This document shows positions 10,742 to 51,178 of a stretch of 64,000 nucleotides of DNA, in pieces. Position numbers and translations under genes: made by a program. The notes beneath the pieces are model-generated. The model searched no databases and had not been told where the DNA came from. It saw only the letters and a program-made list of their open reading frames with translations. The stretch's first letter is position 1, and every line of letters starts with the position of its first letter. Location: sequence record NC_048054.1; one strand, written 5' to 3'.

Positions 10742-11104
10742 TCAGGTATTTACAGATTCTGGAGCGCGTTGCCACACGACGAATCTGACGTTCAAGGCAT
10801 TTTCTTCGGTCTCAGCAGTAAGCCTAGGCTCGTACTTAGCTGCATACTGACGTATATGCTCAGGGCGAATTGCAAGTCGCGCGTTAATCCTGTGAATTGG
10901 GTTCGGCACAGATTCGTATGAGTAGTCTTCAATAGCGACCAGATTATCAATGCGGAGAACACCAGGAACATTAAACACTTTCGGCAGCACGCCAGGCTTG
11001 ATTGCTGATCCCAACACTGTCTCGTGATATTCGACAAGCGCTTTAACCAGCAAGCGGCCAGCAGCAGTAGACAGCGTTAGGTTATACTCAGTTCTAAAGT
11101 CCAT
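10742..11104 (-). CDS. Hypothetical protein, 120 aa
   Basis: AGGAG RBS; fills the gap in a co-oriented gene run. Confidence 0.7.
   Translation of the reverse strand: MDFRTEYNLTLSTAAGRLLVKALVEYHETVLGSAIKPGVLPKVFNVPGVLRIDNLVAIEDYSYESVPNPIHRINARLAIRPEHIRQYAAKYEPRLTAETEENALNVRFVVWQRAPESVNT
10747..10755 (-). promoter_or_regulatory. CTGTAAATA-class promoter motif
   Basis: Exact motif 26 nt upstream of start 10721, embedded in the 3' end of the upstream ORF. Confidence 0.6.
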
Positions 11105-48486: not shown

Positions 48487-49776
48487 TTACTTCTTCTTTT
48501 TCTTTTTCTTCTTCTCTTTGGGTTCGTCGTCTTCGTCGTCGTTACCCAAATCAACCACCAGCTTGCCGCTGTAGATATCAGACATGGTTCTGGTGACAAC
48601 TGTTTCCAGCATAATGTCTGCTGGTACCGAAGTAGAGTTGAATGCTACTTCGGCATCGGCCAACGCTGATTGCAGATAGACCAAACTGACCAGATTGACT
48701 TTGATATTGTCTTTCTTGATCATGTTCATGAACATCTTGAGGCCAGCAGACTGCCACTTGTTCGTTTCGGCGTAATGCCCCAACACGCCGTGAATAATCC
48801 AACGACCTTTCGCAACGATTGCACGTGGGTTATTCGCTTCGCGCAGGAACTGGATAACACCAATCAAGTCCATGCTGAGATAAGCACCGATCATCTGAAC
48901 TGCTTTCGCTTCCATGTCGATTTCTGGATCAGCAGCAGCCAGCTCGGCAACGAGGTTCTTATCGAAGTCCTCACCACCTTTAACCGAAGCGTAGATGTTT
49001 TGCAGCATGGTGATTGCACCACGCATCTGACCACCAGCATACTCGGCAACCTGATGGAGCGCTGCGTCTGCTTTATCACGCGCTTTATCTTTCTTCGGTA
49101 GGATGCCCAGCTCGTCACTGATCTCCAGCAGACGTTTATGAATCACGTCGGTCGGAATAGGTCTGATAGGCAGTTGCGTCATACGGCTGATCATCGTGTT
49201 CTTCATCTTCTCTGGGTTCGTTGTTACGAAGATGAATACAACGTGAGCTGGTGGTTGCTCGGTGATCTTAAGGAACTTCGATTCAGCGGCACCTGACATG
49301 AGGTGTGATTCGTCGAAGATGAATACGCGACGCTTGAACATCGGACTAAGCGGTGCGCTGTCTACGATCTTCTGGCTACCCTCAACCTTACCATGATCGC
49401 CACCCATATCGAACTCTTGCTCGTCAGGATGTGCGCCACGGTCGTGCATCTCACACGAACGACATTTGCCACAGGCCGAGAACGTATCACAGTTGATGTA
49501 CTTCGCTACCAGACGTGCAAACGTTGTTTTACCTGAACCGAGATGGCCAGTAATGATCATCGTTGATGGAATCGTTTTCGACTTCTGCCAACCTTTCATG
49601 ATCTTAACGATATGGTCTTGACCCACATAGTCTTCAATCTTCTTCGGTCGGAATTGATCTGCAAAGTTAATCGTGGTTAACTCTACAGACTCAGAAGAAC
49701 CGCCTTTCTTTTTCGGTGGCTTATCGTCACCGAAAGAACGCGACTTCTTCTTCTTTTTCTTTTCTTCTTTCGCCAT
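48487..49776 (-). CDS. dnaX: Clamp loader, DNA Pol III gamma/tau-like AAA+ ATPase, 429 aa
   Basis: ADQFRPKKIEDYVGQ, GHLGSGKTTFAR, C...CGKCRSC Zn site, FIFDESH, TMISRM; poly-Lys at both ends. Confidence 0.92.
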   Translation of the reverse strand: MAKEEKKKKKKSRSFGDDKPPKKKGGSSESVELTTINFADQFRPKKIEDYVGQDHIVKIMKGWQKSKTIPSTMIITGHLGSGKTTFARLVAKYINCDTFSACGKCRSCEMHDRGAHPDEQEFDMGGDHGKVEGSQKIVDSAPLSPMFKRRVFIFDESHLMSGAAESKFLKITEQPPAHVVFIFVTTNPEKMKNTMISRMTQLPIRPIPTDVIHKRLLEISDELGILPKKDKARDKADAALHQVAEYAGGQMRGAITMLQNIYASVKGGEDFDKNLVAELAAADPEIDMEAKAVQMIGAYLSMDLIGVIQFLREANNPRAIVAKGRWIIHGVLGHYAETNKWQSAGLKMFMNMIKKDNIKVNLVSLVYLQSALADAEVAFNSTSVPADIMLETVVTRTMSDIYSGKLVVDLGNDDEDDEPKEKKKKKKKK

Positions 49777-49813
49777 TTTACTTCGCCCTATAGTTTTGAT
49801 GCGTTACACCTGA

Positions 49814-49822
49814 TATTTACAG
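49814..49822 (-). promoter_or_regulatory. CTGTAAATA-class promoter motif
   Basis: Exact motif 38 nt upstream of the clamp-loader start. Confidence 0.6.
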
Positions 49823-49838
49823 ATTTTAGACAAAAAGA

Positions 49839-49867
49839 AAGGACCACATCCAAAATGGAGGGTCCTT
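49839..49867 (-). terminator. Probable terminator
   Basis: AAGGACC...GGTCCTT stem followed by T-rich sequence on the minus strand. Confidence 0.5.
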
Positions 49868-49918
49868 ATGGTGTTACAAAGTTTGGGATGATAACACATC
49901 GGCAGTGGGCGCTGACGA

Positions 49919-50116
49919 TTAGGCAAAGCTCATTTCCCAGCGTGGCACCACGCGGAAGAATTGCTTAAAGTGGGACGGTGGATTCTGCTTGATGGATTCA
50001 AGTTTTTGCTCCACAACGTCGTAATCTTTTATGCCACTCTCAACGCAGTGAGTGGTGAATGTACCGTCAGCCTGAATCAAGTCGGCGACAACACGGTAGC
50101 TTGGTTTACGAAGCAT
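49919..50116 (-). CDS. Hypothetical protein, 65 aa
   Basis: AGGAG RBS; CTGTAAACA variant motif at 50157..50165. Confidence 0.7.
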   Translation of the reverse strand: MLRKPSYRVVADLIQADGTFTTHCVESGIKDYDVVEQKLESIKQNPPSHFKQFFRVVPRWEMSFA

Positions 50117-50204
50117 CTATTCTCCTGTGCTAAAAATTTCTCGTTCTTCTGAATTATGTTTACAGTTTACTGCGAGTAGTCACACAAGAATAAAGTCAGA
50201 AAAG

Positions 50205-50552
50205 TCTTAAACTCCAATAGGCTCTCCGTGAAAAACCTATTGGAGTCCACCCTCGCCAGATGACGGTCCAGCCAGGGCTTTCTCCCCGTGTCTTTCAAAT
50301 GCACCGACACGGTAGCGCTCGCGGTCTTACGCTCTTTGTGGCAGCGAACGTTTCGGCAGGTAGCGTGGTTCGCAGCCTAGAGCAGCCGCATTCGGCCATA
50401 GCGATAACGCGGTGTTACGCTACTTGGCCTAGGGTGACTCAGGGCCGAGTCTGTACAAAAAAAAAAAGAGTTCGGCCTATCCCCAAATTCGGCAAAAGAA
50501 ACAGGCCGAACTAAACAGTCAGCGCAAACTCCGTATGCACTGTTTTGTACTG
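50205..50552 (-). ncRNA. Candidate structured non-coding RNA (~340 nt), family unknown
   Basis: Gene-free interval with at least 8 inverted repeats, an upstream sigma70-like promoter and a terminal perfect 11-bp hairpin followed by T-rich sequence. Transcription not demonstrated. Confidence 0.5.
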
Positions 50553-50558
50553 TTACAA

Positions 50559-50587
50559 ATTAGAAACATTCCAAAATATTCAGACAA
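50559..50587 (-). promoter_or_regulatory. Sigma70-like promoter TTGTCT-N17-TCTAAT
   Basis: -35 box at 50582..50587, -10 box at 50559..50564, 17-nt spacer, pointing into the structured interval. Confidence 0.5.
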
Positions 50588-50590
50588 TTC

Positions 50591-51178
50591 TTAACCCAAC
50601 ATCGGGAGAAGATTTTGCAAGAAATGTTGCTTGTCGAATGAACTAATTCGGTGAGGATGATCAATGTGCGCGTTCCATCCTTTGGTGAACAGCATCACAT
50701 TGCGAGGTAGCACTAACGGCGTACCGACGCGAGTGAACTTGTCGCGTACCGCAGTAACAGGATTGTCGTCGACCAGAATCCAAGTACCTTCGCCGTACTT
50801 CTCATTCAGGTAAGCAATCTTGTCAGGGTGCTGGCGACTGTCCAGAACGTCGATGTGGTCAAACAACGACAGATGTTTTTCCAGAGCTTTGCGTGTGTTG
50901 CGTTCGCCTTTCGCGTGATAACCACGATGCGTACAGATGCCAACACTAAATCCGTCGCGCACCAACATCGACACGGTCTGGATGAAGTAATCACGCATGT
51001 TGGCTTCGAGCATGAAGCGACCATCTTCCAACATCTCGACGAAAGGCTCATGGCCATTCTCTGGAGTGATATACGTGTCGGTACCTGGGTAGATACCGAA
51101 GTTCATCAGATAGCACAACATGAAGTTATGCGTATCAAACGCAGTATCATCCATGTCGAAGAAAATATGTTTGATCAT
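50591..51178 (-). CDS. HAD-superfamily hydrolase, 5'(3')-deoxyribonucleotidase-like, 195 aa
   Basis: FFDMDDT (motif I), ICTHRG (II), K, LVDDNP (IV). Confidence 0.82.
   Translation of the reverse strand: MIKHIFFDMDDTAFDTHNFMLCYLMNFGIYPGTDTYITPENGHEPFVEMLEDGRFMLEANMRDYFIQTVSMLVRDGFSVGICTHRGYHAKGERNTRKALEKHLSLFDHIDVLDSRQHPDKIAYLNEKYGEGTWILVDDNPVTAVRDKFTRVGTPLVLPRNVMLFTKGWNAHIDHPHRISSFDKQHFLQNLLPMLG

Follow-up and report, generated by a model that had tools for sequence, protein, structure and literature searches.

The put RNA of phage HK022 brings about processive antitermination through RNA alone, with about 70 nt and two stem-loops, and the leader of T4 gene 32 is a short pseudoknotted operator that lies directly before the start codon it regulates. 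GOLLD, ROOL and OLE are ornate RNAs that form RNA-only assemblies (PMC12286853). Here, we describe a locus in a 64,000-nt stretch of sequence record NC_048054.1 (hereafter the window; record coordinates are window coordinates plus 124000). The source of the window is Dickeya phage vB_DsoM_AD1 (AD1; 100% identity over 1.4 kb around the locus), a 261.7-kb jumbo myovirus of the genus Alexandravirus. The locus is a 474-nt intergenic gap (50117-50590) between the genes for the HAD-like protein AD1_207 and the 65-aa protein AD1_206, in which a sequence-only reading had proposed an unannotated, highly structured non-coding element of the minus strand. We found that purifying selection maintains this locus as a single strand of minus polarity folded into 15 helices, including an H-type pseudoknot. 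We propose that the gap is the gene for a structured non-coding RNA (ncRNA) of approximately 350 nt, running from about 50552 to 50195, which probably acts in trans as a folded RNA.

A locus conserved as a folded single strand

The annotation of jumbo phages is given over almost wholly to protein genes, and no ncRNA is annotated at this locus in the phage records examined; the RNA is annotated in none of the 46 records that the AD1 gap matched in blastn searches. Identity to the AD1 gap was 80-96% in Alexandravirus records and approximately 71% in Sasquatchvirus Y3 and Ep52 and in the Snuvirus-like group of SNUABM_7, 13, 14, 21, 25, 34, 45 and 46. Among 11 relatives compared, the gap was at least as well conserved as the flanking coding sequences in most, and better conserved than the HAD gene in all but S22. 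In SNUABM_32, for example, identity was 96.2% in the gap, 90.4% in the 65-aa gene and 84.4% in the HAD gene, and the corresponding values for SNUABM_45 were 76.2%, 65.7% and 63.8%.

The minus strand of 50190-50560 folds with -146.4 kcal/mol (z = -5.1; none of 100 shuffles was as stable), compared with z = -2.8 only for the plus strand. Nearly all of the 15 helices are present in the single-sequence minimum-free-energy fold. These helices were assigned by hand from an alignment of the minus-strand gap (A1, 23 sequences), for which 22 relatives were fetched and aligned by MAFFT blind to structure. In A1, standard pairs make up 93.5% of 2138 cells, as against 29-44% when the partners are slid by 1-3 columns, and 32 of 94 pairs are changed on both sides; RNAalifold reported compensatory changes at 25 pairs. 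On four of five measures, none of 500 shuffles equalled the value observed for A1; the number of further pair types was not above that in the shuffles. A model-fitted alignment of 30 sequences gave compensatory changes at 35 of 55 pairs, but this alignment is biased towards the covariance model, and the MAFFT alignment serves as the independent test. G-U cells outnumber A-C cells by 186 to 15 on the minus strand, which identifies it as the strand that folds. The examination of covariation in the syntenic interval of relatives, which the sequence-only reading had suggested, thus shows helices kept by compensatory substitutions above controls, and the proposed structured non-coding element is borne out by its fold, its covariation and the lack of annotation.

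The stems covary freely, and the loops and joiners are fixed: GUAAGAC, GCUACCU, CCGUCA, GGGGAG and GUAACACCGCGU. The strands of the terminal helix P13, ACUCCAAU and AUUGGAGU, are base-paired yet invariant in sequence. Fixed loops and joiners together with covarying stems would be typical of RNAs that are active through their three-dimensional fold, by partner binding or a tertiary core, and this pattern appears unlike that of base-pairing small RNAs or simple terminators.

No known family accounts for the element. Rfam 15 gave no match at gathering thresholds in the whole window, chance-level matches only at E values up to 10 in 49700-51000, and nothing in seven relatives of AD1; the families covered were tRNA, tmRNA, RNase P, SRP, 6S, group I and II introns, riboswitches and self-cleaving ribozymes, as well as GOLLD, ROOL, OLE, HEARO and raiA. 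ARAGORN found no tRNA or tmRNA. These searches agree with the initial impression that the element is not a tRNA, tmRNA, RNase P, SRP or 6S RNA or a group I intron. A sponge for CsrA of the CsrB/RsmB type was rejected by direct count, with 7 GGA in approximately 360 nt where about 6 are expected; the only GGA resembling a CsrA binding site is in the loop of helix P2 (A-N-GGA-G-U). A ToxI-like type III antitoxin or an iteron array was likewise rejected, with no tandem repeat in the gap and weak two-copy direct repeats only; the GCUACCU of the P8 loop bears a 7-nt likeness to ToxI, but nothing else matches. The literature on AD1, PaBG and phage ncRNAs, with the Y3 and Alexandra papers not covered, contained no description of the RNA. 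Our best reading is that the AD1 RNA is a member of a previously undescribed family among the phage-carried orphan structured RNAs.

Architecture and distribution of the RNA

The whole predicted RNA spans approximately 358 nt (50195-50552, minus strand), with its 5' end taken from the promoter and its 3' end from the last hairpin and tail. The inverted repeats, the T11 run and the promoter-like hexamers on which the sequence-only reading was built were all found in place. Its view of the extent of the element needed revision: the conserved unit is longer, the pseudoknot had been missed, and the oldest part is the 3' half and not the supposed attenuator domain.

The 5' module (50453-50550, minus strand) is a predicted three-way junction of helices P1-P3. 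P1 pairs 50543-50550 with 50453-50460 (repeat TTTTGTAC with GTACAAAA) and is invariant in 23 sequences; in Yoloswag, two positions are changed on both sides, from GUACAAAA/UUUUGUAC to CGUAACAAG/CUUUUUACG, with one mismatch. The pairing of the 5' leader with the U-tract region, already noticed from the sequence, is this helix. P2 (50536-50542 with 50520-50526) is 100% paired with three compensatory pairs, and its loop (50527-50535) carries an invariant GGAGU. P3 (50502-50511 with 50470-50479, plus an upper stem) contains the repeat AGTTCGGCCT (50469-50478) and AGGCCGAACT (50503-50512), is 100% paired with five compensatory pairs and forms a hairpin of -22.2 kcal/mol. It is followed on the minus strand by a U11 tract at 50457-50467, the A11 of the plus strand. 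A terminator scan skipped this hairpin because of its large loop, and called P13 only. Near-identical phages have between 6 and 13 T in the run at 50457-50467, a variation in length that suggests homopolymer slippage.

The middle hairpins P4 and P5 (50394-50451, minus strand) are mostly invariant, with one compensatory pair (helices 4-7), and this region differs between lineages. P4 pairs 50447-50451 with 50436-50440, and P5 pairs 50418-50429 with 50394-50403 around the loop GUAACACCGCGU (50404-50417), which is invariant in 23 sequences. In Ep52, a 10-nt duplication (GTAACACCGC) lies within this otherwise invariant loop. A 9/10 complementarity between the 5' strand of P5 and the P8 loop occurs only in AD1 and its closest relatives; it is lost in Alexandra-type sequences and is therefore treated as chance.

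The first core domain (P6-P8, 50321-50389, minus strand) is closed by P6 (50386-50389 with 50321-50324), which encloses the P7/P8 stack and is longer in Snuvirus-like phages through matched insertions, GCGAGG with CCUCGC. Compensatory changes occur at five of the six pairs of P7 (50379-50384 with 50330-50335) and at all ten of P8 (50368-50377 with 50340-50349), which includes the repeat GCGAAC/GTTCGC (50344-50349 and 50368-50373) and has GCUACCU in its loop. The return strand is the joiner GUAAGAC (50324-50330). A 19-nt internal direct repeat (50320-50338 and 50408-50426, 84% identical), with the common sequence AG.GCGUAA(G/C)ACCGCG, spans the P5 loop region and the P7/P6 return strand; both copies are invariant in the close group, and they may be twin binding sites or the product of an old duplication.

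Next comes the H-type pseudoknot (50286-50318, minus strand). Its stem S1, GCGC at 50315-50318 with GUGC at 50301-50304, is 100% paired with two compensatory pairs, and S2, CCGUGUC at 50306-50312 with GACACGG at 50286-50292 (the repeat CCGTGTC/GACACGG in DNA), has five compensatory pairs. A script located the pseudoknot in 10 lineages, where the order S1a-S2a-S1b-S2b is constant, the stems take at least seven different sequence combinations, and the loops are 1-6, 1-3 and 7-10 nt long; it is always preceded by (G/A)UAAG and followed downstream by a G run. In AD1, the linker after it reads GGGGAGAAA, with the G-rich GGAGAAA at 50279-50285. P11 (50274-50278 with 50249-50253) encloses P12 (50267-50272 with 50255-50260), and 6 of their 11 pairs are compensatory; P11 is swapped for other complementary sequences in Yoloswag, SNUABM_5 and fHe-Yen9-02. 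The P12 hexaloop CCGUCA (50261-50266) is invariant; at its position JA29 has CCGACA. The RNA ends with P13, a 13-bp terminal hairpin (50236-50248 with 50209-50221, domain 50209-50248, minus strand) that contains the perfect repeat ACTCCAATAGG (50211-50221) and CCTATTGGAGT (50236-50246). This hairpin (-23.2 kcal/mol) is the sole terminator-like site called by the scan, and its apical pairs covary. The tail UUUAAGA..UCU.ACUUUA, extending to 50191, is kept only in the close group.

The family extends to more distant relatives. The gene order of the locus is common to Yoloswag, pEa_SNUABM_5 (Rivsvirus) and Yersinia phage fHe-Yen9-02, and a profile of the AD1-type RNA matched the 3' half in SNUABM_5 and Yoloswag. 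A covariance model of this half (R1; 198 positions and 51 pairs, from 50195-50391 and relatives) found exactly one copy in the window, at 223 bits. In searches that covered pattern-fetched loci, R1 matched at full length in SNUABM_5 (55 bits), Yoloswag (50 bits), the 72-kb metagenomic contig UViG 3300031414_21 (44.5 bits) and fHe-Yen9-02 (26.4 bits, E = 1.5e-5), and it also matched the Salmondvirus phages JA11 (34.5 bits) and JA29 (32.3 bits) and the 257-kb metagenomic phage UViG 3300014590 (23.5 bits). A 3' core of approximately 190 nt (50195-50391), composed of the P6-P8 stack with its GUAAGAC joiner, the pseudoknot, the GGGGAG linker, P11/P12 and the long P13 hairpin, is thus present in Yoloswagvirus, Rivsvirus, Salmondvirus, fHe-Yen9-02 and metagenomic jumbo phages. 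In at least seven genus-level lineages, the core always follows the HAD-phosphatase gene directly and precedes the clamp-loader gene; the lineages that bear the RNA infect Erwinia, Dickeya and Yersinia.

The 5' module was found in six lineages as a promoter-like element, P2 with its GGAGU loop, and P3 followed by C/UC and 5-13 U, with stems that are wholly resubstituted between lineages. Yoloswag, SNUABM_5 and fHe-Yen9-02 have the module, and Salmondvirus (JA29-type) phages lack it; in fHe-Yen9-02, a longer stem (GCGUUU with AAACGC) places the U tract within an internal loop. Salmondvirus-type phages have no 65-aa gene, and their core starts approximately 45 nt past the HAD stop codon; after it come a strong intrinsic terminator, the motif AAATCTGTAAAT and the clamp-loader gene. 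In JA29 and UViG 3300014590, the terminator after the core precedes the clamp-loader promoter CTGTAAAT. Because Salmondvirus has the core without the 5' module, the oldest unit appears to be the 190-nt core, with the upstream HAD gene as its constant neighbour.

In three scans of IMG/VR with degenerate patterns, the RNA was confined to the AD1-type phage clade, including metagenomic contigs of the jumbo-phage type. Further scans covered metagenome contigs and 185,579 genomes, both with profile filtering, and a protein-guided scan was added. None of the 44 pattern matches in the bacterial genomes was true, and of 80 matches in metagenomes only phage-like contigs passed the profile filter. No match to the RNA was obtained in UViG 3300030339_3 or in two phages with related clamp loaders, Lu11 and Alcaligenes phage Afa-NA1. 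On our best reading, the RNA family belongs to the 'hairy' jumbo myoviruses of Enterobacterales. Because a pseudoknotted RNA that is better conserved than most flanking genes occupies one slot in at least seven lineages, an important role in infection is likely.

The AD1 RNA is bracketed by promoter-like sequences of two types. On its 5' side, a promoter-like element (50557-50590, minus strand) directly follows the HAD stop codon and contains TTGTCT (50582-50587) and TCTAAT (50559-50564) at a spacing of 17 nt, with an alternative -10 hexamer TAATTT at 50557-50562. The sequence GAATTGTCTGA...C-TAATTT varies little or not at all in 23 relatives of the close group, and the C-TAATT core is kept in five lineages including Yoloswag and SNUABM_5; fHe-Yen9-02 has a different TAAT-containing stretch. 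On the 3' side, the phage promoter-like motif ACTGTAAACATAATTCAG of the 65-aa gene (50149-50166, minus strand) marks the end of the RNA unit. Its consensus TCTGTAAAYAT occurs in 11 copies in the window where 2 are expected, mostly on the coding strand and, in the copies checked, approximately 6-40 nt upstream of start codons; copies lie at 10746, 16624, 20044, 29194, 36568, 37851, 49813, 50156, 59205 and 63744. One copy stands between the RNA and the 65-aa gene and another before the clamp-loader gene. The motif resembles the T4 late promoter TATAAATA, and in the Lu11 record AACTGTAAATAGTAGG (CTGTAAATA), which precedes the clamp-loader gene of that phage, carries the label 'putative middle/late promoter'. 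PaBG, a phage of the wider group, encodes its own sigma-70-like factor (PMC7412058). The phage promoter motif separates the RNA from the next gene in both AD1 and fHe-Yen9-02, and with a host-type promoter before it and the next gene's phage-type promoter after it, the AD1 RNA is arranged as a separate unit.

Function and rival explanations

In our preferred interpretation, the AD1 RNA would start at its own host-type promoter. The 5' module would form a three-way junction closed by a helix that involves the U tract; because the tract is engaged in this way, P3 and the U tract would be at most a leaky terminator, which may end some transcripts to give a small RNA of approximately 100 nt. The lack of covariation in the alternative pairing, the invariance of P1 and its compensation in Yoloswag, and the fHe-Yen9-02 stem point to the full-length read-through RNA as the product under selection. 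Transcription would end at or after P13, before the phage middle/late-type promoter of the next gene, and the stable RNA would bind a protein or small ligand in trans during infection, as a ribonucleoprotein scaffold or a decoy, and would not be a leader that switches a downstream gene.

Several points weigh against a stable trans-acting RNA. Transcript data were not found in the searchable literature, and the promoter, the ends and the stability are all predictions. A simple sigma-70 scan did not call TTGTCT-17-TCTAAT, because TCTAAT has no A at position 2; of the promoter proposed from the sequence, the hexamers and their conservation stand, but the scan gives it no support. In Salmondvirus-type phages, no promoter-like element precedes the core, and the RNA would thus form the 3' part of the HAD transcript there. 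In AD1, termination at the internal hairpin and U tract could limit most transcripts to approximately 100 nt. No partner protein or ligand was found, and the 65-aa protein, which JA29 lacks, matches no RNA-binding fold. Finally, a cis role would explain equally well why the RNA always lies upstream of the clamp-loader gene.

We can also speculate, tentatively and with more doubt than confidence, that the 190-nt core has its own activity and represents a new class of functional RNA in giant phages. Such a core would consist of the three-helix stack, the GUAAGAC joiner, the pseudoknot, the GGGGAG linker and the invariant P13 helix, and would have been kept since before the split between the Alexandra/Y3/Yoloswag and the JA (Salmondvirus) phages. 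Candidate activities are a protein-free processive antiterminator for replication genes, an aptamer that soaks up a host signalling or defence molecule, and a ribozyme.

The main rival to a trans-acting RNA is a role in cis, in which the RNA would be a leader that governs how far the polymerase transcribes into the 65-aa gene and the clamp-loader gene. It would be either an attenuator or riboswitch or, like put, a processive antiterminator. The RNA and the clamp-loader gene invariably share a strand, with the RNA upstream, whatever intervenes, and terminator-like hairpins lie within or after the RNA: P3 followed by its U tract, P13, the strong terminator of JA29 and another at 49830-49860; the position of the RNA relative to these terminators is compatible with a put-type mechanism. 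The combination of invariant joiners and covarying stems would fit a riboswitch aptamer too. The terminator-like hairpin and U tract seen on the minus strand by the sequence-only reading do recur, as P3 followed by 5-13 U, in six lineages. However, the alternative pairing that would make them a switch does not hold up: GGCCGA/UCGGCC has no compensatory pairs and is broken in 8 of the 23 relatives (6 + 2), exactly where the P3 partner is compensated, and no conserved mutually exclusive antiterminator pairing was found. The recurrent TTCGGC is indeed present at 50352, 50391, 50471 and 50488, but is unconserved outside Alexandravirus. The attenuator-like first domain with switch-like pairings therefore mostly fails, and P1 argues for a three-way junction in the read-through RNA. 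In addition, a separate promoter motif precedes the next gene in AD1, fHe-Yen9-02, JA29 and UViG 3300014590. Between P13 and the terminator, the two available JA29-type relatives have A/U-rich spacers that differ from each other, so that no expression platform is visible, and no alternative helix was seen there in JA29 or UViG 3300014590. No riboswitch or leader family matches. We therefore regard a cis-acting leader as unlikely.

A second rival divides the locus into two RNAs, a small RNA of approximately 100 nt (P2, P3 and the U tail) and an older core of approximately 250 nt produced by read-through or from the upstream operon. This would account for P3 (-22 kcal/mol) and its C/UC and 5-13 U being kept in six lineages despite full replacement of the stem, for the core without the 5' module in Salmondvirus-type phages, and for the invariant GGAGU of the P2 loop, which is seed-like. 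Nevertheless, P1 joins the 5' end to the bases immediately 3' of the U tract, a pairing that is relevant only in a read-through transcript, and the U tract of fHe-Yen9-02 lies within an internal loop of a longer stem; we consider the division into two RNAs quite improbable.

It is very improbable that the RNA is a ribozyme, for example one that excises itself from the HAD transcript. The compact pseudoknotted core has the invariant unpaired bases that a ribozyme might have, and the RNA is apparently co-transcribed with the HAD gene in Salmondvirus-type phages, but no self-cleaving family of Rfam matches and no cleavage-site signature was found.

Still less credible is an element acting at the DNA level, whether a replication origin, a primer RNA or a structured single-strand origin, as the sequence-only reading had offered for an alternative. 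The locus adjoins the clamp-loader gene, and the counterpart gap of Afa-NA1 has iteron- or promoter-like CAACTGATACATGAG repeats. The AD1 gap, however, has no iterons or tandem repeats and no turn in GC skew at 50 kb; the 186:15 excess of G-U over A-C and the pseudoknot point to a folded RNA of one polarity, and Afa-NA1 and Lu11 do not have the RNA.

A small protein gene, such as the plus-strand 84-aa open reading frame (ORF) present in AD1 at 50260-50514 or one of the small ORFs annotated over the RNA in three relatives, can be dismissed for practical purposes, as no open frame is common to the 23 relatives, the longest frames vary in strand, frame, position and length, indels are not multiples of three (as in the T run of 6-13) and substitutions are pairwise-compensatory. 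Conservation of the 84-aa ORF had been named beforehand as the result that would speak for a protein; the ORF is not conserved, and this test comes out for the RNA. The small ORFs annotated over RNA homologues are fHeYen902_106c (L039 1582-1788), HOR66_gp203 (L040 2152-2316) and MPK73_gp214 (L041 2164-2289), which are probably false gene calls, so that probable false ORF calls are corrected in at least three published genomes.

Neighbouring genes and comparison with known systems

All genes around the AD1 gap are carried by the minus strand, and similarly sized gaps elsewhere in the window contain small ORFs. The upstream gene AD1_207 (50591-51178, minus strand) encodes a HAD-like protein resembling phosphatases; it matches PHROG 16292 and, with less strength, the phosphatase portion of 'polynucleotide kinase', and no solved relative was found. 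That this protein is a functional partner of the RNA would be pure speculation.

The downstream gene AD1_206 (49919-50116, minus strand), with the ribosome-binding site CAGGAGA at 50121-50127, encodes 65 aa with a confidently predicted fold (pLDDT 91.6) of beta-beta-alpha-alpha-beta type, comprising two long strands, two helices and one strand. The model had no significant match in the PDB and none to an RNA-binding fold, and the protein belongs to no PHROG or NCBIfam family. A homologue accompanies the RNA in six lineages and is restricted to phages with the long RNA form. As a protein partner of the RNA it was rejected, in view of the absence of a fold or family match and of its absence from JA29, which carries the RNA.

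Between the 65-aa and clamp-loader genes, a stretch of 57 nt (49812-49868, minus strand) is 100% identical in Snuvirus-like phages, and the genes flanking it are only 64-82% identical between AD1 and these phages. It contains a terminator hairpin AAGGACC...GGTCCTT followed by TTTCTTTTT, TTGTCT and the promoter motif TCTGTAAATAT, and is an ultra-conserved terminator-promoter cassette. The clamp-loader gene AD1_205 (48487-49776, minus strand) encodes a protein with lysine tails, MAKEEKKKKKK at the start and KEKKKKKKKK at the end, both from long A/T-rich homopolymer-like runs; Tandem Repeats Finder (TRF) reported CTT x9 at 49744-49769, and tblastn alignments to relatives begin only at residues 12-32. 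These tails are possible candidates for slippage-prone sequence. In Afa-NA1, approximately eight direct repeats of CAACTGATACATGAG-like units, 35-60 nt apart, lie upstream of the clamp-loader gene (L192 2260-2640) and are followed by AAATCTGTAAAAGG before it; they may be an iteron array or repeated promoters.

With exact helices, invariant loops and natural variants that have no 5' module, the RNA is a defined object. Several of the phages that bear it are biocontrol candidates for fire blight and soft rot (PMC9686651, PMC6143709), and there is practical value in knowing the essential non-protein genes of biocontrol phages.

Among known systems, the only Rfam model that scored was ctRNA_pT181 (RF00242), which shares two hairpins and a U run with 50455-50556; the score of 25.6 bits compares with a gathering threshold of 56 (E = 0.88), and the match is a generic one to hairpins and a U run. 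The 5' module resembles bacterial small RNAs with Rho-independent termination in its promoter, its GGAGU loop and its GC-rich hairpin with at least five U, but the U tract and the bases that follow it pair with the 5' end, and the conserved RNA runs 250 nt further. Like the T4 gene 32 leader, the AD1 RNA has an H-type pseudoknot in a non-coding RNA of a replication-gene region in a large lytic phage; its pseudoknot, in contrast, lies deep within a large fold, with a hairpin and a promoter motif between it and the next gene. With put it shares a promoter-proximal, stem-loop-rich nascent RNA in a phage operon, before intrinsic terminators and with no obvious protein partner nearby; it is five times larger and pseudoknotted, has no sequence resemblance to put, and its own hairpin and U tract precede the core. 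The likeness to GOLLD and ROOL, and also to OLE and raiA, lies in a length of hundreds of nucleotides, covarying helices and pseudoknots, invariant unpaired bases and carriage by phages. The AD1 RNA, however, matches none of them in sequence or structure and is smaller, at approximately 350 nt with a 190-nt core. It resides in lytic jumbo phages of Gram-negative Enterobacterales, in a fixed gene neighbourhood.

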